Positions 1 through 56,894 are shown, numbered from the stretch's first letter. The stretch is 64,000 bases of DNA from Ruditapes philippinarum (GCF_026571515.1 NW_026858315.1:62001-126000); one strand, 5' to 3'. Notes: generated by a model from the sequence alone, not told the origin. Program-made: numbers and translations.

Positions 1-1291
1 TGCATTTTCCACGGAGTATTAATCAAAGATATGAATTGTGAGCCATAAATTGGTCATTGTACGGTGGCCAATGTGAACCTAAATGTGCATTAACCTGAGC
101 CAATATGGAAAGTATGAGATAGCCTTGAACATGGCTGTTTTGCCTTCTAAGAGTGCCTTTCAAGCCGTCACACTCTGTGCTAGAGGCTCGTTGTTTCAAT
201 AATTATATGATTGATTCTTGAAACAGTTGTGGGACAGGATGTTTGTGTTATGTAACAAAACACACATGATATTGCACTTAGATACAATGAAATGCTTTGG
301 AACAAAATATAATGCTGCTATATCTAGTATCTAGAACAGTTTTTACCATTTATCGAAGATTATGTCGATGCGGCATTCCCTCTTGCACATTTATATCAGG
401 CAGGTATTTTAGAAGTATTCTTTTTCAAATTCAAACACATTTTTTCAACAGACATATAGCTGTATATTATTTAGTGTATTTAAAAAATTACTGAGTATGT
501 TCCTTATTTTTATTTTAGTAGTCATGTTTGTAACAAGTTGTTTTACGCTTGTTTTACTCGTAACATGCAAGTGTTATATTGAAGTAATTTGTTGTGGCTT
601 TATTTACCCACTTGTACTGATTAATTGAAAAAAAATAATGTCAGAATGATTCTCATACACTAAAATATGACTTGAACTTCAATATATTGTACTATATTTC
701 TAAAGATAATTATAAAGCCACATAATTTGATTTATTTAAAGACACGCCTACAAATGCATGCAATATTAAAGAAAATCGTACAAACCCACTTAAGAAATAA
801 AATGTTTACACACAATTTATGTAAACCTTGCATTTCTATGTCATGTAAACATTTTCTAAAAAGTCTAGTAATACTTGCTGATTTTTAAGCTTTTTCTTGC
901 ATACTCGGCAAATCTATAATTTGTTAAGAACAAACGCAGTAATTATCGTCTTTTAATTAATGTTATATTTTTGATACAAAATTGAAGATATGGAGTTATA
1001 TTCATACGTTCTTTTAAAAGTATATCTGTTAAGTAAAGTGCGTTGATTGCATACAATAAAGTAAGCATAATAACGTTATTGTCATTGATTTTGTTTGTAA
1101 AAAGCTAATTGTAATGTAACAATTAAGCTGGAACAAGATATAATAAAATAACTGCTATAGTTTTTGAACATCAGATATATGTTTTGTTTGAATTCATTGT
1201 AGTAAAATAATGCTTCGGTCAGCACATTTTATAGTACATACCATGTACAATGTGTAATAGATACTTCAGGTTATATAGATTGTAATGCATA

Positions 1292-22530: not shown

Positions 22531-23003
22531 ATATGTTTTACTCATTTAAAAATTATTTGTATGCAAATCTGGAAACAAAGTGATCCCCCGGAAGCATTAA
22601 TAACAACAAAACCACATAAGAATTGTAGACTCGGTTTGATTGAGTCTGTACATGAGGGATAATGAATAAGTGCAACATCCCTCACGCCCCTAGCACCGGC
22701 TTGAGCGGTACTCAATTCTCAACACTTAATAGTGCTGGCATCAATGATCCCGAAGGACCGGAAAAATATAACAACACTGAAGTGAAGTACGGGGCAACTT
22801 TTTACAGCTGCCACACGGCACTTGACACCTGCTGTTGTGAAGTATAAAAATCTGCAAGTCCTTTGATAGAAAAAAAGGATAGTATAACGGACATTCCATT
22901 ACGTCACATGCAAATGGATCATTCGGTCTTTGTTTCCAAATCAGGAAATCACAATAAGGCAGAGGGACTAGTTCCAAAACATAAACCCCGTTTTTTGTCA
23001 TTT

Positions 23004-23226
23004 GAGCCGCGCCATGACAAAACCAACATAATGCATTTGCGACCAGCATGGATCCAGACCAGCCTGCGCATCCGCGCAGTCTGATCAGGATCCATGCTGT
23101 TCGCTTACCAACTCTATTACAAGTAGAGTAAGTGATAGCGAACAGCATGGTTCCTGATCAGCCTGCGCTGGTCTGGATCCATGCTGGTCACAAACGCACT
23201 ATGTTGGTTTTGTCGTGACGCGGCTC
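23004..23226. mobile_element. MITE family M1, TSD ATTT
   Basis: GAGCC...GGCTC flanked by ATTT at 23000-23003 and 23227-23230. Confidence 0.88.
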
Positions 23227-23925
23227 ATTTTAACCTTTAAATTGTAATAAGGTTATCCATTTATATGTTAGAACTAGTATCTTTCAAGGTTAAAGTAGAA
23301 AAGCACCATCATAACATATTACAGACCATATATTACGTGTACATGTATTCTTTCTATCTTCATAATGTTAAATAACGCAATTAACGCGTTTATGACTTAT
23401 AAAAATATTTACTTAATTATCTTTTTTAATGATTAAATACTTAACATTCCTGTATATACTTGTCTATACGTACGAATTGTACGTAAAGGTACAAATGTAG
23501 TACCAGATTCTTAGTGTTTATGGTATTCCGAACAGTAATCGTACACACGACGTAATGTGATAAGATTAACATAATGTATCTAACTATATAAGTGAAAATT
23601 ATCGCCAACGTTTCATCTTTCAACACGCTTCTGATAGTAAGAAATTTTAGATTTGTATTATAGAAGGTAAGAACTTTGAAGTTTGATTTTGTTTCTTAAG
23701 GTTTTGAATATATCTCAAAGAAATGAAACAAATAGTTCTTGACAGAAGTAAGTAAGCTTTCTTTAGTCGTTATGGCGTATATTAATTTTAGTTATGTTAT
23801 ATTCACAATTTATTTAACAATCATCAACTAAGGTTCTGTTGCTATTTGCGAGTAACAATGTTATTTCTAAGTGATTAAAACACAAAAAGTAAAAATGATT
23901 CAATTTGTACTTTTATTTCAGAACC

Positions 23926-26025: not shown

Positions 26026-28909
26026 TACCTCGACGTTCAACGTGCAAATAGTTCTTATTGACAGATTATCGAAACTTGATGCAAAAATGTAATACAAAGC
26101 TTGTTTAAAATTATATGAAAAAAAAACAGTATAAAAAGAAAAAAGAAACTTTTAGATATAAGATGAATACTAAAAGACGGTTTGTTGTTTTGCATACTTA
26201 ACATTAAATGTTACTTAATTTTTATAACACCGATTTCAATATAATTATATCAATTTCAGATAATAAAGACGAAAAAATAAACAATTCTTATTTAATTCTT
26301 TGTTTAACTAAGAGTTACAAAATTATATAGTGAATATAGTGACAACGACTCTTTAAATCAAGAAACATACACTGACAGAAAATCCAAAAAAAAATAGGTT
26401 GCAATGTTGTTTTTAATGAATAATCCGGCTAAAAACCAAACACGGATACTATTTTGATACATTAAGCGGAAGTATTGAACAATTGAAAGCAATGTTACGC
26501 CTTATTTATATTTGACAAATTTATGACAAGAAATAAGAAGCACATACTTAGAGAGATTTATAACCATGTTGTCAATGAATACAAATTCTAACAAATAATA
26601 TTAAATTAGAAAATAGTAATACACATAATTCGTTTTCTATGACGTGTTTCATGTATGCGTATATATCAGTCATTTATTTAGTAAGTGGTAGAGCTTTGTG
26701 ATGTGATATTTAAAAAAAATTCTATCAGTTTAAGTTGTTAAAGAGTTTTGTACAGAACAACCATTTTGATAACAAAGGGAACACATCTACACCCTTTTTC
26801 ACGTTTATCTCTAAATAAATACGTATTTATAGTAACAACCTTATTTTTGCATGCTCGGTTTACTGAAATGATAATATGCTGGTTACAGGCTATATAATAG
26901 ATGTTTTCTTAAAGATCTTGTAGAATTGTATATGGTTTTATACCAAAAATATAATGCTCAAATGAAGATTTATTAATATTGTAAGTTCCAAAAAGCATTA
27001 TTTGTAAAGATATAACCTAATTTTATATTTCATGTTAATAAACGGAGGTTCTCAGAATTCTTTTTCCTATAAGGTCTAAGTCAAATTTTTCAATAAGAAA
27101 TGAATTAATGCATATATTTTAATGAATACATATAATGTTGACAAATATTTGCAGTACATATTTTACATATTCTTCGATGTTTGAAAATTGTTTGAGAAGC
27201 ATAATTATATAAATATATATTTCACATAAGTTTGGTAACAAACTAAATTACAACATACAGGATCTTTAAATCAGAAATTATAAAAAATACATCTATTACA
27301 AAATGAAGCTCTTACTTCAGTAAGTTACATGCAACATTTTCTTTGATTTATTGGACTTTTTACATACCCTATTACATGTACATCTGTTTCTTTAAGGAAT
27401 CTATGAGAAGATACACTTTAAATGAGAGTATTGTAGTTTTCATTCTTTATATATGACTGGTATATATGCAAATGTTTTCCGAGTCCAAAACATTATAAAG
27501 CAAATCAAATGCTGATGATGTCAACAGTAACAAAACAGTTTTATTCTTATTATCATGGTAATATACATCACAAGTGTTTCACAATACATATTTCATTAAC
27601 ACCAGGACCTGACCTTATTTAAAAAGATTGGATTTCCCTTGTGTCTTGGGTTTCTTTAAAGGGTTGAGGCATCAGAATTTATCTCTGATCGTAAGAGGCG
27701 ACTAAATGGGTTCGAATAACTGAGGTCTATGCAACTCTAAGCTCAAGCAGATGATGTAGTTTTTACTTTAAGTTTGTAACGCCCGAGGTTAGCCAAACTA
27801 CTTTCCTATTCCTGCGCCAAAAGACCTATACTTTGTTGTGCGCCGTAAATAACCAAACAAAATACATAGATCTGGATAAAAAGGGAGATAATATAATGCA
27901 GGGTCGTACTCTCAGTGCCTGAAAGGGCGGATGGACCCTCATTAAGCCTAGAATACATGCAGTAAAGTCGCCCAAAATTTTGAGATGTAGGCCGGGCTTC
28001 TATCCTTTTACTGTGTTGTTAATAATATCTAAATCATCATTCCTTCTTGCTTAGAGAAGTTTACAAGCTTTCATGTGATATCATGTGAAATGTAATCATT
28101 TAAACATTAAAACTAGGACATTGGTTTGTTTAACTACCCAGCTATTATAAACCGGTGTTATCAGTTATCATTAAGTTATATTTAGATTCCAACGCGGGTA
28201 TACTCATGTGAGATACTACAATATTAATACATCGAAGGATTTTATAAACAGGTAAGTTGTTTACATATTAATGAAATTTCTTGTCATATTTTAACTTATA
28301 TATGTTCATTATCTTAGAAAAGTCATTAATATTGAGATATACTTGTATGGGATATTGCAAACACGTGAACAAAAACGTTTAATTACAGACTTAATAAATG
28401 ATGCCTTGTTTAGATATTTTATATGAGTTGTGGTGCCACATACTGTGTTTATAAGGTATGCCAAATATTAACTGTTCATTATTTCAACGTCTCCTCCGTG
28501 TAATGTTCATAAACGCTTGTATATGTTGTATTTAGCTTATCTGGATAGAAGCAACGCTTATTAACAGGTTGAATATGAGGTATCGCATTGAAGGGTGCAT
28601 TAAATCGCTTGAAATTTCAAAAGTAGAAATGATTCCTCAAAAGTAATTCCTATGCTATCACTTTGACATTTATCATACATGTTATCATGATTTCAATCTT
28701 CGTCTAGAAATAATTCATTCACATAACAGGTGGCAAAATAAGTCGTAATACAATTATATAGTAATCTTTCTTTTTTTTCGAATTTGTCAGGAACTCAACA
28801 TTACCGAGGTAATACATTGTAAACGACATTTAAAACAAAATTATAATGAACTGTTTGATTCTATTTTATATGAAGTCAAGTCAATTTTCATCTTGACTTA
28901 GCATTTAGA

Positions 28910-43374: not shown

Positions 43375-45327
43375 TTTCTGTAAAAAAATATATATATTCA
43401 ATGCTTAGTATACATACAGTTTAAGCCGAGTGGAATACTTGTGAACTGTTGTTCATATATTTGTTATTTAAGTCTTATTCTTAACAGACATTTGTCGATA
43501 AATTTATGTTTAATTTAATTTTTACTGAAAATAGAAAATTTACACAGTAACCCAAACATCAGTGATACTGATTATCGTGACATTATGTAGAATAATTATA
43601 TTTTTTATCTATGCTACGATGATATAAAATATGTCTTTATATTTATCGAAAGTCCAAGATTATTTCTAGCCTATTTTCTCCGTTTATTTTATGCCATAAT
43701 TCCAATTATGTATGTATCCAAAGTAAAAACTTACCTTGATGTAATATAAAATTTACGTATGTAATATTTATATCAATGTTACAGCTCTTCAATACTATTT
43801 GTTGTATGTTTTAATTATCTAATTATTGTTAGATTATTTCAATGATGAATAAGTCGAGTTATGACGAATTGTGATTGAATGATGAAGCAATTTGATGTGT
43901 TTGTTTATAAACAGAAATTTTAACAACACTCTTTACTCAAATTGCACGTTGAGTATAAGCGCTTGTTAACTCCAAACTGTGGAAAGTGCGCCCCCTGTAA
44001 TCAAAGCTGATATAGTAGTTATGACTAATTGAGGGTGTTTGCGTGATTTAATATTTACACATTTAACACTAACAAGCTGAAATAAAACCAGTACAAATGT
44101 ATTTGATATTTTTCTTTAGCAACATATTCTTACCAATGTCAAATAAGTTATTAATGTAATAGTTATATGTATGCTTGTTATTTTATGTCTAGTTTATTTT
44201 AACATGATGAACTTTCGATGAATTCATTTTCATTGACAAATAAGAATTATAATATGCAAGAAACCTGACATAGTAGAATTTGATTTAACGCATGATTTAT
44301 ATTATTATAATTATATGTTAGAATATTAGATAAAATACTTTCCATTAATATTATGATAATCTAATTTCTTCCAAAGACCAATCTCACCAAACCGAATCAA
44401 AAGCTTGTAAAGGTCGATAAATATTGCCTGACTGTCATTTATTTGACCCGTAGCTCTAGCAATCTATACTATACCAAAATTATATTACAAATTATTTGAA
44501 GAAAAAATATACAATGAGAAAATTTTAACTAAATATTTTAGACTTCTAAGTATAAATATATAAATTCCAGTTTTTTTTCAACATATCTCTAGACTAAGAA
44601 AATATGGTATAAAGTATAAATAGCTATTGAGTTAAAACTTGCTTATTATACAATGTGTCGTGTACATGTTCATACCTTTACTAAACCTAAAAGGGAGATA
44701 AATTCAGCAGTCTTAAGTGTACAAATTTAACTATGTTTAATATATACATAAAAATGTCTTGTTTGCGCTTTACAATAAATTAAAATAAACAGACCAAAAG
44801 ACAGGCGAGTTTAAATACCTTTTAAGGTTATGTTGACGTAAAAGCGATTTTTTTTTCAATTCTTGGCCAAAATTCTTAAGGGCAACATTTTTATACATTT
44901 TGCATTCCTTTTAAGGCGTTAACTATAAATTCTCTAAAATAATGCAAAAGAGAGAATTTTAAACACACCAGTGACAGTTATTAATTAAATTAGAAATCTT
45001 CAAAGTGTCACAATTTTCATTAAATCATTCTATGTCAGAATCTCAGTGTGGAATAATTAGCAACTATGATAGGGTAATAAATATGACAATAAATTAAGTA
45101 TAAGTCTTAATGATATAAAGGTATAATATGAGAACTAACTTAGTATCAACCAGTTATCCCTCATTATATATGCTTCAAATCAAGTCAGGGATAGGTTTCA
45201 ATGTTTTCTAGAAATAAAATGGTCATTTATGCCATTATTTTCTGTAAATCTACAAAAAAGGGAGCAACAGAGTTTTTTTTTTCCTGCGGTCATAATACAG
45301 ATGTTATTGAACCAGCTTCAACTTTCG

Positions 45328-45856
45328 CACGGTGCATATCCATATCGGTACCCTCTTTGCGAAATTTACTGAAACGGTACCCTCTCCGATCATGCACAGG
45401 CCACTCTTTGCTGAAAACAAACAATCAATGGATACTCATACAGCTTATTTTCCTTCTACTGATGAAAAGAGGTAAGTCATGTGGTAAAGTAGTGTACCAC
45501 GGAACACTAGAATGTTTTATTTATGTGTTGTTTTGTCATGTGCCAATTTTTCAATTACTGCAACTTCAAAATAAGCTTCATAAAATCGACATGTCATGCC
45601 TCGCTATCGCCTCGACATATTTTGTCGGGCTGGAACGAACGAGTTATTTGATTATATACGCACCATGCATGTTACATGTGTTCATTTATTTATCATCTTT
45701 TGACAAACTGCAGTTATTAGTCAAAAATGAACGTTAAATACATAAAAACACCCTACTTTCGGTTTGGCAGCGGCACGGGCTACCTCTCTGTGTTTGAATT
45801 TTTATGTCACAGGTAACCTCTCGCTCATTTTTTTAACGCACAGGTACCCTCTAAGC
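45328..45856 (+). repeat. Left TIR (529 bp) containing exon 1 (ATG 45428, donor 45472) and GGTACCCTCT-type repeats
   Basis: Reverse complement of 56337-56865. Confidence 0.95.
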
Positions 45857-48800
45857 ACACGACTGTTTTTTTTTCTTTTTTATTTGTATCAATCGTTTAA
45901 TGGTTTTTTAGTATAGGTTAAAGTTTATTGGTCAGACCAATTTAATTTTGTAAATATGTACTAATAATTTGAACCGGCTTAGTGTTTTAAATTATTTTTA
46001 TAATAGACTGTTTTACAGTTTGCCGAGTAACCTAAGTAAATCTGTTATGATTTTGGTTTAGCATTTATAAATTAATGAATAAATTAATTAATTATTTAAA
46101 CAGTTGCATTTCTTTACAGATCTCGAAAACGTAAACGGAATTCAGGATTGTGGCTACACCATCCGAAAAAGAGACCTGTACAGAACATTTATGAAACAAC
46201 AACGAGAGCAACCAACCCATCATGGACGCCACAAAATATTTCAAGCACAGTCTGTCCGAATAGCGACGAACTTAGAGCCGCTCCTTCAAAAAACTGGACC
46301 AGGAATAAAACACCACCAAAGTCCAAAAAAGTGTTGTTTGAGACTGGCATAGAAGAGTCACTTTGCCAGGAAATTACTAAATTACTTCCAACAATCCTTT
46401 CAAATTTAGGACATGCTGGTAAACTTGTTGAATTTTGTCAGTTTCTTCGATTGATTGCCACAAACAAGTTTCCGTTACATAATATATCATTGTTACTTTT
46501 GCTTGATGTGGCCAAATGGTACTCTCTAGACAATACATCTCAAATGAAGTATCCACCTGAAACCATGCTTTTTTGGAAAACAATGTACCGATTATTTCAT
46601 GGGAAAGCTCTTCGTTTTATGAGCGGAGAAAAATCTTCAAGTCAAGTTCTTAATGAACAACGTGGTACCTGTACGCCTCAAAACACTTCCATAAATTTTG
46701 CAGTACCAAGCGTTTTTGCCATTAATAGCTTTGTAAATACAGAAACTGCAATTCCAAAGGAAATTCGTCCTGGTATAATAAAGCAAGGTATAGAATTGAG
46801 ATCCAAGGAAAAATGTTATGTTCTAAGTGTAGATGGCAAGAAATTGGCACCAGGTTTAAACAGAGAAAACGGCGATCAGGATCTTTTTGGGCATGAACAA
46901 ACTGAAACTTTAAATCAAACAAAGGAGCGTCTTGAAAACGAAATTAACTTAATTGAAAGGGTTCACGAGTGCTGGAGCAAACTGGACAATGACGAAAAGT
47001 GTGAACGTTTGGAAAAAATAATTAAGACAATATCATTTCGTATAGTAGAAATGCGGAAACTGTTTTTAAAGCAGACACTGGCATTGAAAAGGTTCCAGAA
47101 AGAGGCTGGTGAAAAGTGGAGAGAGTCTAGGTTAGTTTACGCCATCAGCAGTGTGCAAGCCCAGATATTCCAAATACGGTCAGTAGTAAAAAGGCTTCTG
47201 CATATAAATGATCTACTTCTTCAAACTGGATCAGCGATTAAGCAATCACAACGCATTACTAATACCTTCAGTTCTGAAAGTACTATAGATATCAGTGGGC
47301 AGGATAACTGTATAAGGCTTAAAGAAGTAAATGAATTGCCTCAGAATGAGCAGCAGAATATTCGCTTTATAAAACAACGATCTGACGAGTGGTTCAAAAA
47401 CAGGAAAAAATACAAAATAACTGGTAGTACATTATATGGAGCACTGGGTTTAGATACATTGAAAAAACAGCAATCTCATTTTGATCGTGTTGTAAAAGGA
47501 ATACAACAAGATGAGACTTTCTCAGAAGAAGTACAGCATAGGTTAGATCATGGCACAAAGTCAGAGATTCACGCCATAGCGACTTTAGCATCAAAGATTT
47601 TACCATTCTACTATCATGATCTCAAATACATTGAAGAAGGTGCACATGCAGTTGATTTTAATAGTGAACCATTCATGATGGTATCACCAGATGGCAGTTT
47701 ATGTTACATGGAAACAAATAGTGATTGCTTACCTTCACCTCTGTTTGGCTGTGAATTCAAGTGTCCTGTGCAGGCAGAATACAAGACTCCAGTGCATTAT
47801 GAAATACCGTTACGGTAAGAATCAAATTAAAGTAGCATGCTTCCAAATGCATGCTAATTTTCATGTTAATTTTGAAAATATATCTAAAGGTGAAATATTG
47901 TGAGGTGAACAAATAAAGTATTTGACATATTGCAAACAGCACTTACAAACCACGCAAATTACCATAAAAAAGTCAAATTTGGAAAAACAGTCCTTATTGC
48001 GTTAGTAACGAAGTAAAGATATGGTTATAAATACTTCAAAATCGGTCTTATATAGCACATAACATGTAAAGTCAAACTTGGATCTTGACTTGTTTAACCT
48101 TTCTTAAAATTTTAGTATATTTTTCCCAAATTTTGTTTTTCTTGAAATATTTTGGCTTATCTGGAGACATGCAGCTTTAAAAGTAAAGAGTAACAGTAAT
48201 GAACTAATAGTGTTATGACAAATTTGGTGAACGTTTTAATTTGTTGTTGATGAAATGTATTTTTACATTAAAGTTGATCGAACAGTGGTTATATTGGAAC
48301 ATAGAAGATGTCTGTGCTGTGACTTTTGATAATGTAGCTTTAAGTATTATCTTGTAGATTGATATTTAGATTATTATAATTGCTAAAATTATTTATATTA
48401 TCATTATCACTGTAAACATTTTGTTTGTAGGTATATTCCACAACTATTGGCAGAAATGGCGAGTATGCGCATTGATAAGATGATATATCTATGTTGGTCA
48501 GAAGAAAGCTCAACTGTATTTATGTACGTTCTATTTTTAACAATCGGAGTGCGGAGTGAATCCGCCCCGAAAAATGCTCCTCATTCATCTTGATAAATAC
48601 TTAGAAACATAGAATAATAATTGAAATAAAATATTAAAGGCTCATCAAGGCTCATCAAGTCTGAAAAAGCAATCTGTTTTAAATTTTTAACAGCCTTTTA
48701 CCATTTATATCCTGTTACTGGTCAGAAAATATAACTCATTTGATTTATTTCTGATCCATCTTTTACATTTATTTCCAAATAAAACTATGTACATATTTGG

Positions 48801-51800
48801 AATTCAAAGAACCACTCTTTTCATTTTAATCACAAATATATTTATTTTTAGTTCTATTTTCTTCCGGTAGGAAATAGCAAACAAATATTCAGAAGTATAA
48901 ACGTATATCCGTTAAAGCAACTCCACTAAGGTCCAATAGCCTTAAATAATAAACTTTGAAAATCTTTTTTAAATCAACTGATACACTTATTTTTGAAACC
49001 AAGCAATAGATGATATATAATTATTCATGGTATAAAACTGACAATCGATTTTTTGTCGATCTTTGGCCTATTTAAATTAAAAGTAATTTAAGCTTAAAGC
49101 GTTGCAACGCTTTCATTTTTTGGACCAATTTGCACAGTGAAATTTGTTGTTTCTGTAAAACGGATTGAGCGTTATTGGTTAGACATAAATCTAGTCCTAC
49201 AAAATACTTGAACAATGTTTTCGATCTCTTCTTGTAAAAAAGAACCGCAGTGGAGTCGCTTTAAAGTATTTTATGAACCTATGTAACAATCATTACCTTT
49301 ATTATCAATAGGGCAAGTTTCGACCCAGAATTATGGAACATGATTTTGGCTGAGGTAACAACAGTTTATAATGGTTCAGACTTGAAAAGGCCGACTAAAC
49401 TATCGAAGACAAGTAAATCTATTGCTGAAAAAATGAAAGAGTACAGGGAATCTTCAACTGAACTACTCTGTGAAATACCATCTGTAAAAGGTATTAGCTC
49501 CCAAACGTCACAGTCTAATGACAATTCGCCCTACTTGTTTCCAATAACTGTCTTGAATGAGACTGAAAAATTGACGGAAATAGATGTTATAATGAATTCA
49601 GCAGTGTCCGCCGTCCGAGAAGTGCACGAGATTTGTAGAAAAAAGGCAACCGAAATTTTAGTTTGGTTGCTTAGTGATACTGACCGCACCTGGGATCCGG
49701 AAGTACCACATTCCACTCCAGTGGCGTATGCTATGGCTGGATACAGTCTACCAGTAAAGCCAATGCGAAACATGCATGAAGATATTTTAGAACATTGCTT
49801 TCAGAAAGGTATGAATGTTGTGTGTAGCAGTTTTGATGGTCAGTGGTTGAAACTTGCGACGAGGGATTCTAGTGACAGGCCCCTCACATTGATTCAGCTT
49901 CAGCGTGATGTATACGACAACGCTTCGAAAGTAAGCCGTAAAGAAATCATCAAACACTTCAAAGACTTAATGATAGTACAAGACACTATCAAAGATATCA
50001 AGTACGTCAGGGTGAACAACTCACTTACTGTATCGTCTACAAAACTAAAAAGATTAATGACTGCTATACGCAGAAGCAGAAGCCCGAATGAAATTTGTAA
50101 AAAGGGCGCTATTGACACTGATCTTAAAAGTGATAATTTATCCTGTTTACCAAATGAAGCATTAGAAACATTAATAACTGAAGAAATTAATGACACAGAA
50201 ACAGATGAAATAGTTTCTTGTACAGAAGATACACGCAATGTTCCTGTAGTTGTTGATGACAATGTTCACGATGACAATTGTGAAAATAATGTATCATTTT
50301 CAAACGTGCTTACTGAAAACGAATTAAAGACTGCTCTTTGTGAATTTCAAAACTCTAAGCAGAAGTCTATTAGTAAACGGTGGAATGGAAAATCAATAAC
50401 TGATTTACAAACATGTATAAACAATGTGCAGCTTTTAAGAAAACTAACACACAACGAATTAAATAGTCTCATTTATCTGTCTCTTCATTATCAGAAACTG
50501 AAAGGTGTTTATATAAGAAAGTCATGGTCAATATTGGAAAAAGTCAATGGGCTAAGCAAAGTAATCGGTAGCTGTGATCAAATAACGCAAGAGAAAACAA
50601 TTAAACAAATGAAATCATTAAGATATTTTTCAGCAAATGTCGTTGAGCGGAGTATGAAGTGTGTACCAAAGTCAACACTGAACAATTTGTACGCTGTCAT
50701 CTTATACGATTCCGAATACAAGAAGTGGCTGAATTCCTCCCCTTTTTGCGAAAAGATGCAAATTCAAGGATTAGGAGAAACCAAACTGTTCTCATATCCA
50801 GAAATGAATGAAACAAGGCAAAAATTGGAACACAGATGCGTTGATTATCACCATCTATTTGTCAATTTAAGAGTTAAAGTTTGCAAAGACGGTTTACAGG
50901 GTATACGCAAAGAAGCTTGGCACGCTGTTGCAGAGTTAGGTGATAATGTGATCAGTAAAGCTATTGTGATTGATCTTATTGATAAACAGAACAATGCATA
51001 TGCCAAACGTGTATTCTCCTCAGAAGTAGAGTCCGCTATGAGGTCATTGAATTTTTACAAAGAAGCAAATTTTTGTAAATTGGTTAGACATTGGTATCAA
51101 GCGGAAGACATGCCAGGTTTATCGGCAATTGAACGCTGTAAACGACGCATAGCATTGAAGAACTTTCTTCTTGATGGTGTAGATTTTGGTCAATATCCAC
51201 AACCTGGAATGTACGTCAAAGGATTTCCAAAAGTTATGTTCGAATCATTCCTTCAACGGATTGATACATCCTTCCAGTTATACTCTAGCATAAAAGGGAA
51301 ATGTTATAATCCTAGGGCAATATCTAGTCTAGTAAATGAGACATTTTTTGGGGAATTGTCAGATCTGGAACCGACGAAGCTTGGTTGTCCAAAAGCTATA
51401 AGTATACCCCGATTGATATCAACTGTGACAGAAATTCAGCATTACCGCTGTGATCCAACTAGAAGGCAAGAAATATAGTATAATGCTTTTTTTTTTTAAA
51501 TCACATAGTGCATATTTAAACATTAACTTGTTAAAATACAATCATTGCCATGTTAATGAAAATTTAATACATTGTATCATATAGATCGTATAAAATAAGA
51601 CGTAATATAGATATATTTTAAGTAAAATAATAACCGGCAGAAAAAAACAGATATTTCAGTTTGAGACACTATTTATAATTCAGTAAGCCATGTTTGTTTA
51701 AAGCCTTTGCATTATTAATTTAAAAACCATAACGTTTTCCAATGTGCACCACATCTTAACGTTAAAAGCTTATGCGTGTAGATGTCCGACAGAAGTCTGA

Positions 51801-52661
51801 TTCAATAAGTACATGTATTTATTTCCTAAATTTCTTTTCCAGGACTTTTAAGATCATAACAACGAGAAAGTCCGTTTATCCAGCTACTGAGTTACATATC
51901 GCAGATTTCCCGTCCACCTCTTCTTTAAGCGAAAATATTGTTGATGGATCAACATTGATCGTTAGGTTAGCTTGATCTTAATATTATACTATGTTCCATC
52001 TTTTCACTGGATAGAAAAGCATATATATAGGTAGATTGGGCGTCCGTGGCGGATTGATTAAGGTCGTTGACTACAAACCACTTGCCCCTAACCGCTGTTG
52101 GTTCGAATCCAGACAGGGACTTTGCATTTTTTTTATCTAAAGAAGCTATCCAGCTAGCTAACAGAAAATAATAATTAGTTCTACGCAGACGCCTGTCATG
52201 TCTGAAATAATATACCAAGTGACACCTGAGGTTTTCCTCTACATAGCTGGAAAGTCGCCATATGACTTATACTAAGTCGGTGTGATGTAAAACCCAATCA
52301 AACAAACACACATATATGTTAATATAGTGTTTATAGGATAGCTAGCTGCACTAGGTGGAGAAAATAAAGACACACAAACAGACAGGCAAAGAAACAGTAA
52401 AATTAAAAGGTTACTCAGTTTAGCTACCAAAGGTTCTGTTAACTCTCTTGTATCAAGCGTGATATCTTTTATTTATCCTTTTCCAGAGATCATTCATTTG
52501 ACATGTCTTATCGTAGACGCAAGAAGCAGAGAAAATCGAAGCGTTCCGATGTTTCAAAACCATCCGCTGTAGCGAGAGGTTGCCAGCCTATAAGAGCCCA
52601 CCATAAGTGCGATGAGAGTAAACTACTACCAACTAGAAGACTTGGTATAGAGATGGAGTGA
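45428..52661 (+). CDS. ~1427-aa DDE transposase (P-element/THAP9-like motifs) with inserted YqaJ/lambda-exonuclease-like domain; exons 45428-45471, 46120-47814, 48431-48523, 49312-51465, 51843-51965, 52487-52661
   Basis: The exons sum to 4284 nt with no internal stop. Transposase motifs: KYPPETMLFW...KALRF...AVPS...PGII...YVLSVDGKK (D253), ATEILVWLL...PVAY...VVCSSFDG (D786), VDYHHLFVNLR (DxxH), AKRVFSSEV, ISSLVNETFFG (E1287). Exonuclease motifs: QRSDEW..R..ITGS, HGTKSE, SPDG, EFKCP, YIPQLLAEM. Basic NLS-like RSRKRKR; AATAAA at 52744. Confidence 0.85.
48916..49260. mobile_element. TTAA-flanked Kolobok-like MITE in transposase intron 3
   Basis: ttaa|agcaactccact ... agtggagtcgct|ttaa. Confidence 0.65.
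52038..52308 (+). mobile_element. tRNA-derived SINE in transposase intron 5
   Basis: A/B boxes (gtggcggattgattaagg; ggttcgaatcc), central domain as in 18352-18520, (aaac)n tail. Confidence 0.75.
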
Positions 52662-53938
52662 TTTCGTAACATATGATTTGTTTTAGAGAGACACGTTCGA
52701 AGTACATGTATTTGGCATAAATCAATGCAAAGTGCCTATCGTTAATAAAGGGCTAATATTCTTTGTTTGTATTTGAGTTTTAGTCAAACATGTTAGCCAA
52801 AATGGGTGCCCCATCCAGAAAAAGACTATTGTACATTTTCAAGTTGTTGTACAAGTGCAAAATACAGTGGACCCTCGAAGGAAACATATGCTTCTTTAGC
52901 GCGTCATGTGTAATGCTCCAATCATGCTGAGTCTGCTAAATTGGGGTTTGAACTCCAACCTCGAAATCCGTAAATTTGCACTCTCTCCCTAATGATATAA
53001 ACAGGCCAGACTTGAAGCAGTCCTTGCAATCAAGGTCTATTCAGACAACCGTCTGTAGCCCTCAATTTTGAGATCTAAAATGATATGAATTTAGCACAGA
53101 TAAGTAGGCATGACGGCTTTTGATATGTTCTCAGCTCAATGAACAAACAACAAGCTATAAGCTACCTTCATTTTTTATGACGAAAAGAAAAAGAAAAATA
53201 TTCCAGCTAAACTTGTGACATTTTAATAATAACTGGAACTAAAATTATAATCAACTTACAAGTAAAACAAATAAATCGGATATAATACACATGTACTTGC
53301 TAGATTTTTTTTAAAGAAATATTTAAAAGAAAATATACAAGACGGTCAAGATAGCCCTATATCGCTCACCTGTCTAAATGTCAAAAAGGCAGAACACATG
53401 GCATTGATAACAGTCGTTAGGTCAAAATCTAGGCTGACTGGTATTAAAATTTAAACATTTTAATCATTATGCAAATAATTATTCTGAATGTCATAGCTAT
53501 AGCTGTCATTGAGCACATGCTGATCAGGTAAGCTAAAAGGCTAGCATTAACACAATTAAAATAACATTTCTAGATGTACTGTACCTATTAACTGAAAAAT
53601 GGTAATGAAACAAGAACTAAATGAAACATGAGTGGTAAAAAATTATTGCATTCCTATCATAAAACGGAATAATTATGTGTATTGCATGTTTCTTAAATTT
53701 AGTGCAATATCCACTATTGCAATAAAAATCACACTAAAATATAATCAAAATATCATGTTATACGTACTTTTATAACAAAGCAAAGAACGTAATATTGAAC
53801 AAGAACAATCTTAAAGAAACTAACTAGGATTTGTATAGAAAAAAAACCGAAACTTTAACCGAACAAAAAGGAAAAGGCAGCCTTTAAAAATAACATTTTA
53901 ACTTATTATATAACGTCAGTTTATATCAGTTATTAATG

Positions 53939-54997
53939 TCAGTAGTGTCCAGCTTTCTTTTTATGACGGTACAATGAGCTATGATGTGTGAAAGTTTTCC
54001 CACATATTGGACACTGATGTAATTCCACATATGCCTTGTGCTTCCTGCTATGCTCCTTAAGGTACCTATTGGATTTGAACATACTTCCGCAAATTTCACA
54101 TTTTATATGTTTATTTATGCCACATGTTGTTTTGTGTCGAACAAGGCATGAGCGTGCTTTGAAAGTCTGAGAACATTTTGCACATTTAAAATGTCTGCTA
54201 TTGTAATGCGTTGCAGTATGATCAACTAAATCACTTTTGTAATTAAAACTTTTCCCACACACTTCGCAATAATATGTGTATTTATCTTCATGAGTAGACT
54301 CGTGGCGTTTACAGCCTAGTTTAGTTACATATATTTTACTACACACTTTGCATCTATAACGTCCAGTAGAATGCATTTTTTTGTGTTGGTTAAAAGCGGA
54401 TAGTATGTAATACGTTTTTCCACACACAGAACAGTTTAACCCTCCTTCAGTGTTATGAACATTCATATGTCTTTTCAGACTTGCCTTAAGAGTATATGTT
54501 TTATTACAAATTGAACACTCAAAAGATTTTTTATTGGTAGAAACAGTGACTTCTCCTATTTCTTGAAAAGTATCTCTGGGCACTACATCCATACCTAACG
54601 TGTCGTCCCTTTCTTCAAGTCTTTCTTCCTGTAATTCAAAATCAATAGCTTTATCTTTATCAACGCTTTCTTCGTGATCTTCAGAAACATTGCCAACACT
54701 TTCTTCCCCATGTACTCCAAAAACACTCGTATCAACTCTTTTTACACTTCTTTTCTCCTCCAATTTATCATCACTTTCTTTCGGAAGCACTAAACAAACA
54801 GCTGTTTTGCCTTCATTTACACTCTCTTCTTCCAACACTACTTCGGCTGTTTCACCTGCAGATTCAGCTACCGCATTGGATAAAGCAACGTCTTGTATGT
54901 CAGGAATAAGTAAGTTATTGTTGTGGTCACTTTCTTCCGAGGAATCGTTTTCAGTCAATGGCTTGAACCCAAAGATGTTTAACCAACTGTTGAATTC
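53939..54997 (-). CDS. Transposon-borne C2H2 zinc-finger protein (acidic N-half plus 7 fingers), main exon; start codon in an upstream exon
   Basis: The frame is open from the acceptor ttttatgttttag at 55000/54998 (phase 0, EFNSWLNIFG...). Seven CxxC...HxxxH/C fingers. A candidate small exon from acceptor 55873 ends in ATG|GT at 55860 or 55820. Confidence 0.85.
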   Translation of the reverse strand, partial: EFNSWLNIFGFKPLTENDSSEESDHNNNLLIPDIQDVALSNAVAESAGETAEVVLEEESVNEGKTAVCLVLPKESDDKLEEKRSVKRVDTSVFGVHGEESVGNVSEDHEESVDKDKAIDFELQEERLEERDDTLGMDVVPRDTFQEIGEVTVSTNKKSFECSICNKTYTLKASLKRHMNVHNTEGGLNCSVCGKTYYILSAFNQHKKMHSTGRYRCKVCSKIYVTKLGCKRHESTHEDKYTYYCEVCGKSFNYKSDLVDHTATHYNSRHFKCAKCSQTFKARSCLVRHKTTCGINKHIKCEICGSMFKSNRYLKEHSRKHKAYVELHQCPICGKTFTHHSSLYRHKKKAGHY

Positions 54998-56336
54998 CTA
55001 AAACATAAAATGCAACCACAGTTAAAGCCCGCTTAATTAAGACCAACAGTTTGCCTGGTCTTAAAGGCACATTATGCCTCAGAAACAAATATGCTTTTTT
55101 CTTTTTAAGAATGTGCAAACATAAGTTTTATAAAATTTAGTTCTAGAGCATGTTAGAAGGGTATATCACCAAGGCAAAATGAGTGCTAAATGTGAAGTTA
55201 TTTGTCATAATAGGAGCAAAATGTAACAAAGTAATATTTAGACTTTAATTCAAAATACTAAATTACTGTAACTGAATTGATTGACAAAAGCAACAGAAGC
55301 AAAATATTGTTTAAGTAATTGGCCAGTAAGTAACTCTTTGTAACGTATGGCAGGACACTAAAATTGATCTCATAATAATGATATATCAAAAAAGCATTTC
55401 TGAGGTATAATTAATGGGCCTTCAATGGAGTTTCATGTTAGATATCTATTAGATAAAGTGTTATTAATCTAGTACATTCTATATCCGCAGGTAACTGAGA
55501 TAAAAAGCGAGTAAATGATCTTAAGCTCGATTTATGAAAGCATATTATTTTTCCAAACAGTTTTTCACGACGCTATGCTCTAAGCGTGCAGACATATCTT
55601 AAAAGAAATGGTTTTTAACAGCGGATTTTTTTCATAAAGATTTTTGCTCTTAACTAATTGTGACAAAGTTCGCAAGTTTGTGAACTAATGAATAGAATTG
55701 GCCTTTATATCAAATCGTTTCTGTATTTACATATTGCGTTCGTTATATATTTTAAGTCAAATAAATGTGATTTAAAGTAAAGATGCGCTATTTACTTCAG
55801 CGCCTTTATACAAACATACCATTTCCCAAATCTGTCCTTTAACATCTACATATGATTACCATGTATACATATCTGAAACAAGAAAATACAATGTGATAAC
55901 TATGGTGCTTCATGTGTATCATCGTGGTGGTAACAAGATGCAACAACACAGTACAATGTATTACAATGCCATATAACCGGAGAAAAAGCTTGCATATTTT
56001 ACTAACTAATAATGCTTATTAATGCTGCTGCATTTTGATTTGATGGTGTAATTGGTTGGGGCTTAAGTCGGTTGGAATCCTAAGCGGTTCCTAAGCTTGA
56101 TGTTAAATGTTGCTTTATTTTCCTGAACACTGAACGTGAGGCAAAATAGATCTTTCTCCACCACCATAAAACTATTAAAAGATGCAAGTCTCCATATGAA
56201 CTTTTGTACTTTGTGCCATTAAACATGACCAACAACTAGTAAATCAGTTACGCTTATTTAAATGTTATCAAAACATAGTGTTTATAAGCATACTAAACGG
56301 TTCAACAAATGGAACGTAAATAAAACCACGTGTTGC

Positions 56337-56865
56337 GCTTAGAGGGTGCCTGTGCGTTAAAAAAATGAGCGAGAGGTTACCTGTGACATAAAAATTTAAA
56401 CACAGAGAGGTAGCCCGTGCCGCTGTCAAACCGAAAGTAGGGTGTTTTTATGTATTTAACGTTCATTTTTGACTAATAACTGCAGTTTGTCAAAAGATGA
56501 TAAATAAATGAACACATGTAACATGCATGGTGCGTATATAATCAAATAACTCGTTCATTCCAGCCCGACAAAATATGTCGAGGCGATAGCGAGGCATGAC
56601 ATGTCGATTTTATGAAGCTTATTTTGAAGTTGCAGTAATTGAAAAATTGGCACATGACAAAACAACACATAAATAAAACATTCTAGTGTTCCGTGGTACA
56701 CTACTTTACCACATGACTTACCTCTTTTCATCAGTAGAAGGAAAATAAGCTGTATGAGTATCCATTGATTGTTTGTTTTCAGCAAAGAGTGGCCTGTGCA
56801 TGATCGGAGAGGGTACCGTTTCAGTAAATTTCGCAAAGAGGGTACCGATATGGATATGCACCGTG
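56337..56865 (-). repeat. Right TIR (529 bp) with the identical exon 1 (56765-56722) facing the zinc-finger gene
   Basis: Encodes the same MDTHTAYFPSTDEK-AG|GTAAGT on the minus strand. Confidence 0.95.
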
Positions 56866-56894
56866 TTTCGGCATATTTCGTAAACTGTATGTCT

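Follow-up and report, generated by a model that had tools for sequence, protein, structure and literature searches.

The P transposase relies on the catalytic residues D230, D303 and E531, carries a helix-turn-helix (HTH) and a guanosine triphosphate-binding insertion domain between β5 and α4, and cuts 17 nt inside the element, while P element insertions are flanked by target-site duplications (TSDs) of 8 bp (PMC7776569). Here, we explore an 11.5-kb element (positions 45328-56865, bounded by inverted repeats) found in a window of 64,000 nucleotides from Ruditapes philippinarum (GCF_026571515.1 NW_026858315.1:62001-126000; one strand, 5' to 3', with positions counted from the first letter). We read it, with a probability of roughly 70%, as an autonomous cut-and-paste transposon in which a P-type core is split after β1-β2 by a coiled coil, a lambda exonuclease and a linker. 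The transposase shares with the P/THAP9 enzymes (6P5A; PF12017, PF21787-PF21789) the HTH, a D/D/E RNase H fold, a DxxH-type motif (DxxHLL..R), an insertion domain between β5 and α4, and an LPS/PG motif ahead of the first catalytic aspartate (D1). It departs from them in the distance between the first two aspartates (D1-D2, 533 residues here and 73 there), in the coiled coil and lambda exonuclease that follow β2, in that a THAP domain was not detected, and in a sequence similarity that stays near or below the Pfam thresholds.

Nucleases have been recorded in association with other eukaryotic DNA transposons, and these offer the nearest comparisons. ISL2EU also recruited a YqaJ nuclease, encoded (as the original prediction for this locus had noted) by a separate open reading frame (ORF) beside an unrelated THAP-HTH-DDE transposase of PIF/IS5-like type, and has a different TSD (PMC4482050); membership was rejected, considering that the intronless relatives of our element have a single ORF and a P-like core. 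KolobokE, found in molluscs too, comes closer in that a transposase of the eukaryotic DxxH group of DDE enzymes and a lambda-exonuclease-like nuclease share one polypeptide, with the nuclease situated downstream from the transposase domain, a TTAA TSD, and zinc fingers flanking D1 and DxxH (PMC9587614). In contrast, the nuclease described here lies between D1 and D2 and the 5-bp TSDs have no fixed sequence; the consensus of 56 sequences holds no conserved Cys/His cluster or zinc-finger pattern. Kolobok membership was rejected on the TSDs (neither TTAA nor 4 bp long), on termini that are not 5'-RR, and on the position of the nuclease. The Dada elements of Laccaria and Ectocarpus (PMC3706591) likewise harbour an exonuclease inside the DDE catalytic domain, which is however a DEDDy 3'-5' enzyme placed between the second D and DxxH, whereas ours is a PD-(D/E)xK nuclease of the 5'-3' type placed between D1 and D2. 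In the literature (with Repbase and Dfam outside the scope of the search) we found neither a P-type core that houses a lambda-type nuclease between D1 and D2 nor P-type elements with 5-bp TSDs. The nuclease-in-P-core architecture is undescribed in the literature searched; the recruitment of YqaJ by transposons is already known.

We confirmed that the middle of the protein is a complete lambda-exonuclease/YqaJ nuclease of the PD-(D/E)xK type, with all catalytic residues and the arginine for the 5'-phosphate. The six motifs of the original prediction were all recovered where it had placed them (starts at QRSDEW 47375, ITGS 47417, HGTKSE 47549, SPDG 47684, EFKCP 47753 and YIPQ 48432). The full Pfam profile of YqaJ (PF09588) was matched above its gathering score by 7 of the 10 full-length relatives scanned (E 2e-10 to 4e-6), including two from the same genome (L003 and L010); in the window copy, where introns divide it, the domain was recognised by its motifs and by alignment to such relatives. 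When a profile of 56 homologs was compared with the sequences of the PDB, it retrieved LHK-Exo (3SYY, E = 2.4e-5), lambda exonuclease (1AVQ, E = 3.6e-3) and mimivirus R354; all matches were nucleases and no transposase was among them. The matches to LHK-Exo and lambda exonuclease cover the whole nuclease domain, and the alignment puts W..R, TGS, G..E, SPDG, ExKCP and Y..Q on the lambda exonuclease motifs, a profile match that is far beyond chance. The structural comparison (VIA-align) pointed the same way, as residues 409..608 of the model of homolog P0064 aligned with LHK-Exo at Z 15.8 (172/195 residues, root-mean-square deviation (rmsd) 2.5 Å) and with lambda exonuclease at Z 15. The likeness to this group (PF09588; 1AVQ, 3SYY) thus extends to the full fold (Z 15-16) and to the motif set W..R, TxS, E, SPDG, ExKCP and Y..Q. 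The setting differs: lambda exonuclease is a free-standing subunit of a toroidal trimer, whereas the domain described here forms part of a 1427-aa transposase, in which a coiled-coil stalk carries it; it has no partner annealase and is split in the window by two spliceosomal introns.

The catalytic D, E, K and Q were kept in 54-55 of 55-56 homologs (Q in 55/56) at overall identities of 24-43%, in line with the conservation that had been anticipated, and the W and the 5'-phosphate R are nearly invariant among the 56 sequences (W..R being the 5'-phosphate pocket, with R28, of lambda exonuclease). Such retention of active-site and pocket residues speaks against a catalytically idle structural or DNA-binding module, a reading which we consider very improbable and which draws on homolog P0110, where the SPDG aspartate and other motifs were lost and the frame is still open. 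In this 1167-aa protein the exonuclease motifs have decayed (SPDG to SPAG, KQR..W lost) and the DDE part is intact, so that it may represent a natural exonuclease-dead variant. The family retains its two active sites, and both are therefore probably in use.

The transposase gene was modelled on the plus strand as six exons (45428-52661; 4281 nt coding, 1427 codons), with five introns that are all phase-consistent. The model reproduced exactly the motif coordinates and the numbering (D253, D786 and E1287) given by the original prediction. Searches were run with single window exons or with natural intronless homologs, and the unity of the protein was judged by its relatives. Whole-architecture proteins occur as single chains in databases (P0011, P0012, P0016, P0018 and P0019; 1208-1262 aa), and the three window exon pieces tile such single-chain relatives residue for residue across both introns. 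The same genome encodes at least five divergent intronless paralogs in uninterrupted ORFs of 1325-1482 aa. The claim that the two halves form one unit thus stood, on the single frame of these paralogs and of homologs in other species and on the fitting phases. It is hardly credible that the locus consists of two neighbouring genes or a mis-joined model, with an N-terminal YqaJ protein followed downstream by a separate fragment of a transposase. Public gene calls do list only the 712-aa ORF of exon 3 (P0001), as this reading would have it, and against it stand the preserved phase of all five introns over 4281 nt, the residue-for-residue agreement of the exon pieces with intronless homologs, and the single ORFs of the paralogs. 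Intron 3 (51466-51842) uses a GC-AG splice pair (AG/GCAAGA) instead of GT-AG.

The sequences on the two sides of the exonuclease belong, as far as models and profiles support it, to one core of the P element/THAP9 type, with the HTH, an RNase H fold holding D253, D786 and E1287, the DxxH signature and a helical insertion domain between β5 and α4 (motif starts: SVDGKK 46826, SFDGQW 49829, NETFFG 51335; DxxH nearly invariant in the 56 homologs). The AlphaFold model of the full-length homolog P0064 (1181 aa; mean predicted local distance difference test (pLDDT) 86, predicted template modelling score 0.81) found its best Foldseek match in the Drosophila P element transposase (6P5A, E = 3.8e-6). 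VIA-align superposed the two at Z 30.0 (rmsd 2.9 Å, 374/442 residues, model 97..1131 on chain 136..569), from the HTH that precedes the exonuclease up to the last catalytic helix that follows, and hence on both sides of the insertion; Hermes reached Z 9.6. The ESM Atlas placed the 187 pre-insertion residues of the window next to clusters with a THAP9-type HTH and PF12017+PF21787 (0.94, 181-195 shared features), and the post-insertion half next to PF21787/21788/21789 clusters (0.91).

Profile evidence adds a finer point. PF21787 (TNP-like RNase H N-terminal, 137 positions) is matched directly after the exonuclease by its positions 63-132 only (6/10 relatives, E 1.4e-5 to 0.07), and therefore the first half of the domain, which holds D1, must lie upstream. 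Among the relatives, P0053 alone exceeded the PF21787 gathering score (25.8 bits); the window pieces matched none of PF12017, PF21787, PF21788 and PF21789, and neither they nor the 10 relatives matched a THAP or a RAG1 domain in Pfam. Thirteen canonical P-like ORFs from this genome, compared by hhalign, gave weak and collinear alignments (E 0.013 and 0.099; 0.008 without the insertion columns), which are taken as a consistency check only: DxxHLL..R pairs with D.sH..K.RN, ExFF with IEnfF and, without the insertion columns, LS.DGKK with the DEMsI motif holding D1.

The spacing of 533 residues between D1 and D2, noted at the outset against about 70 in P-type enzymes, was reproduced (D230-D303 in P; PMC7776569). 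The insertion spans approximately residues 275-720 (~446 aa) after RNase H strand β2. Strand labels, which stem from DSSP strings and the P-like alignment, give the order β1 (LSVDGKK), β2 (GDQDLFGHE), three long helices, exonuclease and a return linker (helix, small sheet, helix), followed by β3 (KKATEILVWLL), a further strand (TPVAYAM), helix α1 and β4, which ends in SSFDGQW. The nuclease is thus located inside the transposase fold, as had been proposed, given the PF09588 matches of 7/10 relatives and a 6P5A alignment that spans both sides of the insertion. The β1-β2 segment was modelled with a pLDDT of 87-95 in the full-length protein and of 46-72 when exon 1 was folded alone, as expected if the D253 strand, ordered only with the C-terminal half, pairs with strands of that half. 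Coiled-coil matches dominated the Foldseek results for this exon 1 model, and 6P5A was not among the candidates.

Several points weigh against our reading. The identification of D253 with D1 (D230 of P) is well supported by the model, although the grounds for it are the ranges of the alignment, the strand to which the residue is assigned, its invariance and the absence of the first half of PF21787 after the exonuclease. On its own, the pre-insertion block shows no significant P-like similarity (hhalign E 0.19; no Pfam match on the short D1 and D2 blocks), and the window's own three exon pieces, each scanned separately, had no Pfam match, which we attribute to the two introns that cut the exonuclease domain. 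The splice model of the window gene is predicted from sequence, and so are the activity of the nuclease and the strand and end on which it would act. Finally, P elements have 8-bp TSDs in place of the 5 bp found here, where the termini are 5'-CAC and the terminal inverted repeats (TIRs) reach 572 bp.

The first of these points leaves room for D253 not being the catalytic D1, in which case the N-terminus would be a DNA-binding module, the RNase H fold would lie wholly downstream and the nuclease would be found between domains. We regard this arrangement as improbable. The lack of a significant P-like RNase H profile match for the isolated pre-insertion block agrees with it, and the structural match is known as alignment ranges rather than residue by residue. 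Nevertheless, only the second half of PF21787 occurs downstream of the exonuclease, a single rigid superposition matches 374 of the 442 6P5A residues on both sides of the insertion, the D is invariant (51/51) and its 9-residue strand needs the C-terminal half in order to be ordered, and the Atlas groups the N-terminal piece with PF12017+PF21787 clusters. The placement of D253 within the RNase H fold, on which the original prediction had hinged, was accordingly upheld by the Z 30 alignment on both sides.

The ends of the element, which the original prediction did not cover, are unlike those of P. The two TIR arms, of 572 nt each, are 96% complementary. TSDs of 5 bp without a fixed sequence were found at 10/10 insertions from 6 lineages (TTTCG, AATCA, TTCCA, TAAGA, TTATA, TTTTA, AAAAG, AGTAC, AACAT, TTATA). 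The termini begin with 5'-CAC in 5/6 lineages: CACGGTG in the window element and CACCGTA, CACAGCG, CACTGCG and CACGGTA in four of the five other full-length lineages of the same genome, with CAAGGGG as the exception; the TIRs of these five measure 46-544 bp. The element is a genuine mobile transposon and its family has been recently mobile. Considering the 5-bp TSDs at all ten insertions, together with the 5'-CAC termini, as opposed to the 8-bp TSDs of P, the family combines a P-type core with Transib-like ends. The positions of the features are given in Table 1.

Table 1. Features of the split transposase gene and of the element that carries it (window coordinates; residue numbers follow the predicted 1427-residue product unless a model is named).
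Feature	Position	Strand	Basis
Left TSD, TTTCG	45323..45327	.	same 5 bases after right TIR
Left TIR, starts 5'-CACGGTGCATATCC	45328..45899	+	
Exon 0, within left TIR; ATG plus 14 codons, donor GTAAGT	45428..45471	+	sequence; phase fits acceptor at 46119
Exon 1: start resembling a nuclear localization signal, P/THAP9-type HTH, β1 with D1, β2, coiled coil, first 3/4 of exonuclease	46120..47814	+	ORF; tblastn to intronless homologs; Atlas neighbours PF12017/PF21787
D253, candidate first catalytic Asp (LSVDGKK)	46832..46834	+	invariant in 51/51 homologs; strand 215-223 of P0064 model
Three long helices (coiled-coil stalk), first part of insertion	46910..47245	+	helices 255-278, 281-320, 330-366 (exon 1 model); 246-366 (P0064 model)
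Lambda-exonuclease/YqaJ domain, part 1 (QRSDEW..R, TGS, G..E, SPDG, EFKCP)	47360..47814	+	
Exonuclease catalytic Asp (SPDG), residue 539	47690..47692	+	54/55 homologs; aligned with SPDG of lambda exonuclease and LHK-Exo
Exonuclease E-x-K (EFK), residues 560-562	47753..47761	+	55/55 each; aligned with ELK/EIK of lambda exonuclease/LHK-Exo
Intron 1 (GT..AG, donor GT at 47815), inside exonuclease domain	47815..48430	+	flanking pieces tile intronless homologs without gap or overlap
Exon 2: exonuclease part 2 (R-YIPQLLAEM..., Q584)	48431..48523	+	sequence; tblastn
Intron 2 (GTACGT..AG)	48524..49311	+	sequence; homolog tiling
Exon 3: exonuclease end (FDPELW), return linker, RNase H β3, α1, β4-D2, DxxH, helical insertion domain, E helix	49312..51465	+	
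KKATEILVWLL...SSFDGQW, RNase H β3 through β4, ends in D786 (49835-49837)	49640..49837	+	homolog stretch matches PF21787 63-132; D in 52/55
DxxH signature (DYHH)	50843..50854	+	
E1287, candidate third catalytic residue (NETFFG)	51338..51340	+	48/49 homologs; hhalign onto IEnfF of P-like transposases
Exon 4, after GC-AG intron	51843..51965	+	sequence; matches P0004 residues ~758-788
Exon 5: conserved basic C-terminal tail and stop	52487..52661	+	tblastn to P0004 and P0034
Right TIR	56294..56865	-	
Right TSD, TTTCG	56866..56870	.	

A 5-bp TSD with 5'-CAC termini is the hallmark of Transib and RAG-like elements (PMC7204232), with which our element also shares two convergent genes between the TIRs. 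Could it be a member of the Transib/RAG1-like superfamily outside the P lineage, excised by means of hairpins on the flanks? The ends (5-bp TSDs at 10/10 insertions, 5'-CAC in 5/6 lineages, CACGGTG here) argue for this, and HzTransib (Z 13.1) and RAG1 (about Z 12; range for the group Z 11-13) do align with the model. The P transposase, however, is by far the closer match (Z 30; Foldseek E 3.8e-6, compared with 6.5e-3 to 4e-2), P/THAP9 families make up all of the Pfam and Atlas neighbours, and the second gene codes for a C2H2 zinc-finger protein and not for a RAG2-like one. Transib membership was rejected, the P transposase being the closest core, and we deem this placement quite improbable; a hairpin mechanism may nonetheless operate with a P-type core. 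The second gene is a 339-aa ORF on the minus strand (53939-54958) with about seven C2H2 zinc fingers, convergent with the transposase gene. The right TIR contains the same ATG-plus-GTAAGT mini-exon as the left one, and both genes may thus start inside the TIRs.

We reason that the two active sites could divide the work at the element ends. The DDE site would make 3'-OH cuts and join the ends to the target with a 5-bp stagger, while at the cleaved ends the tethered exonuclease would take hold of the non-transferred strand with its 5'-phosphate and resect it in the 5'->3' direction, leaving 3' single-stranded tails like those produced by the 17-nt staggered cut of the P transposase. Loading on the 5'-phosphorylated strand would be expected because the arginine that grips the 5'-phosphate in lambda exonuclease is kept, and resection could, in addition, set up the donor gap for homology-directed repair. 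We infer the role of the exonuclease from its conservation, and give DDE cutting followed by resection of the 5' strand somewhat less than an even chance of being the mechanism.

The same architecture could serve a different purpose, close to that sketched in the original prediction, which envisaged that the enzyme could resect donor or target ends and might promote gap repair, TIR homogenisation or cargo capture. Here, the exonuclease would act outside excision and integration and would resect the broken donor site or the gapped target junctions, leading to homology-directed synthesis or single-strand annealing; the element would be restored at the donor and its copy number raised. In phage recombination, exonucleases of the lambda type supply single-strand annealing, a role that fits such a function, as do the conserved catalytic residues and 5'-phosphate arginine and the long TIRs (46-572 bp), which could anneal. 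P elements, moreover, need gap repair for copy gain (PMC7776569). Set against this are the lack of a partner annealase in the element, an insertion within the catalytic fold on a rigid stalk, which points to an enzyme coupled to the transpososome and not to one that works freely in repair, and the encoding of the YqaJ protein of ISL2EU as a separate ORF (PMC4482050). We judge a repair function of this sort unlikely on balance, and it and end resection are not mutually exclusive.

A division of labour between strands has a bacterial parallel in Tn7, where the PD-(D/E)xK nuclease TnsA handles the 5' strand and a DDE enzyme the 3' strand, the two being separate polypeptides. The parallel with TnsA/TnsB is a functional analogy only, as TnsA is a restriction-type endonuclease and no homology is claimed. 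Taken furthest, the family would constitute an undescribed lineage of animal DNA transposons of superfamily rank, with a P-type core and Transib/RAG-like ends, whose exonuclease would be an obligatory second nuclease processing the 5' strand (a eukaryotic, single-chain counterpart of TnsA/TnsB) and would represent the first β2/β3 insertion known in the RNase H fold of a transposase. We put this forward tentatively, with the odds leaning against it.

Whatever the mechanism, a whole enzyme can apparently be inserted in the RNase H fold of a DDE transposase away from the classical β5/α4 site, and the split arrangement persists across molluscs and annelids. Transposons of three unrelated designs are now seen with lambda-type exonucleases: ISL2EU encodes the enzyme in its own ORF, KolobokE carries it fused at the C-terminus, and in the present element it is an internal insertion. 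Such repeated recruitment suggests that cut-and-paste elements benefit from resection of 5' ends. The role of accessory nucleases, a long-open matter, becomes testable in a single polypeptide, and a transposase with built-in resection could be of interest to genome engineers. Furthermore, the pairing of a P-type core with RAG/Transib-like ends bears on the evolution of TSD length and end chemistry in the hAT/P/Transib group.

At E <= 1e-3, an exhaustive HMMER scan with exon 1, made to assess the extent of the family, returned 1743 cluster representatives, and 247 remained at E <= 1e-30. Many measure 1200-1600 aa; the weaker matches may be other YqaJ proteins. The closest named proteins are from Mytilus (~50% identity), and named members also occur in Batillaria (gastropod) and Owenia (annelid); the fullest annotation that any of these carries is 'YqaJ viral recombinase domain-containing protein'. 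Hundreds of database proteins (the 247 cluster representatives at E <= 1e-30) that are labelled at most YqaJ are in fact transposases. Several of the relatives carry an N-terminal C2H2-like motif, which the window copy lacks.

Within the genome, the window TIR recurs in abundant, non-autonomous short derivatives of ~1157 bp, each made of two TIRs of ~526 bp with ~105 bp between them (1371 first-look candidates; 70 matches among the 40 candidates scored). They are located on contigs C11409, C14028, C15641 and C7053 of G000 and on many others (L017-L022). The four copies compared were 95-98.5% identical to one another and each had a perfect 5-bp TSD, while their TIRs were ~82% identical to the window TIR; the autonomous master of the derivatives is probably a different, closer copy than the window element. 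A second, degraded copy of the element lies on contig C10991 of G000 (22957-23499 and 28306-28597), with a TIR of 91% identity, transposase fragments of 91-93% identity and a stop codon.

The window DNA is AT-rich. Intron 4 includes a tRNA-like box B (GGTTCGAATCC) at ~52030-52120, possibly part of a tRNA-derived short interspersed nuclear element; ARAGORN called no tRNA gene within the transposon. Canonical P/THAP9-like transposase genes, with an uninterrupted PF21787, were found at 45 places in the same genome (L033-L062), and since they coexist with the split family, the latter is a separate lineage and not the sole P-type element of its host.

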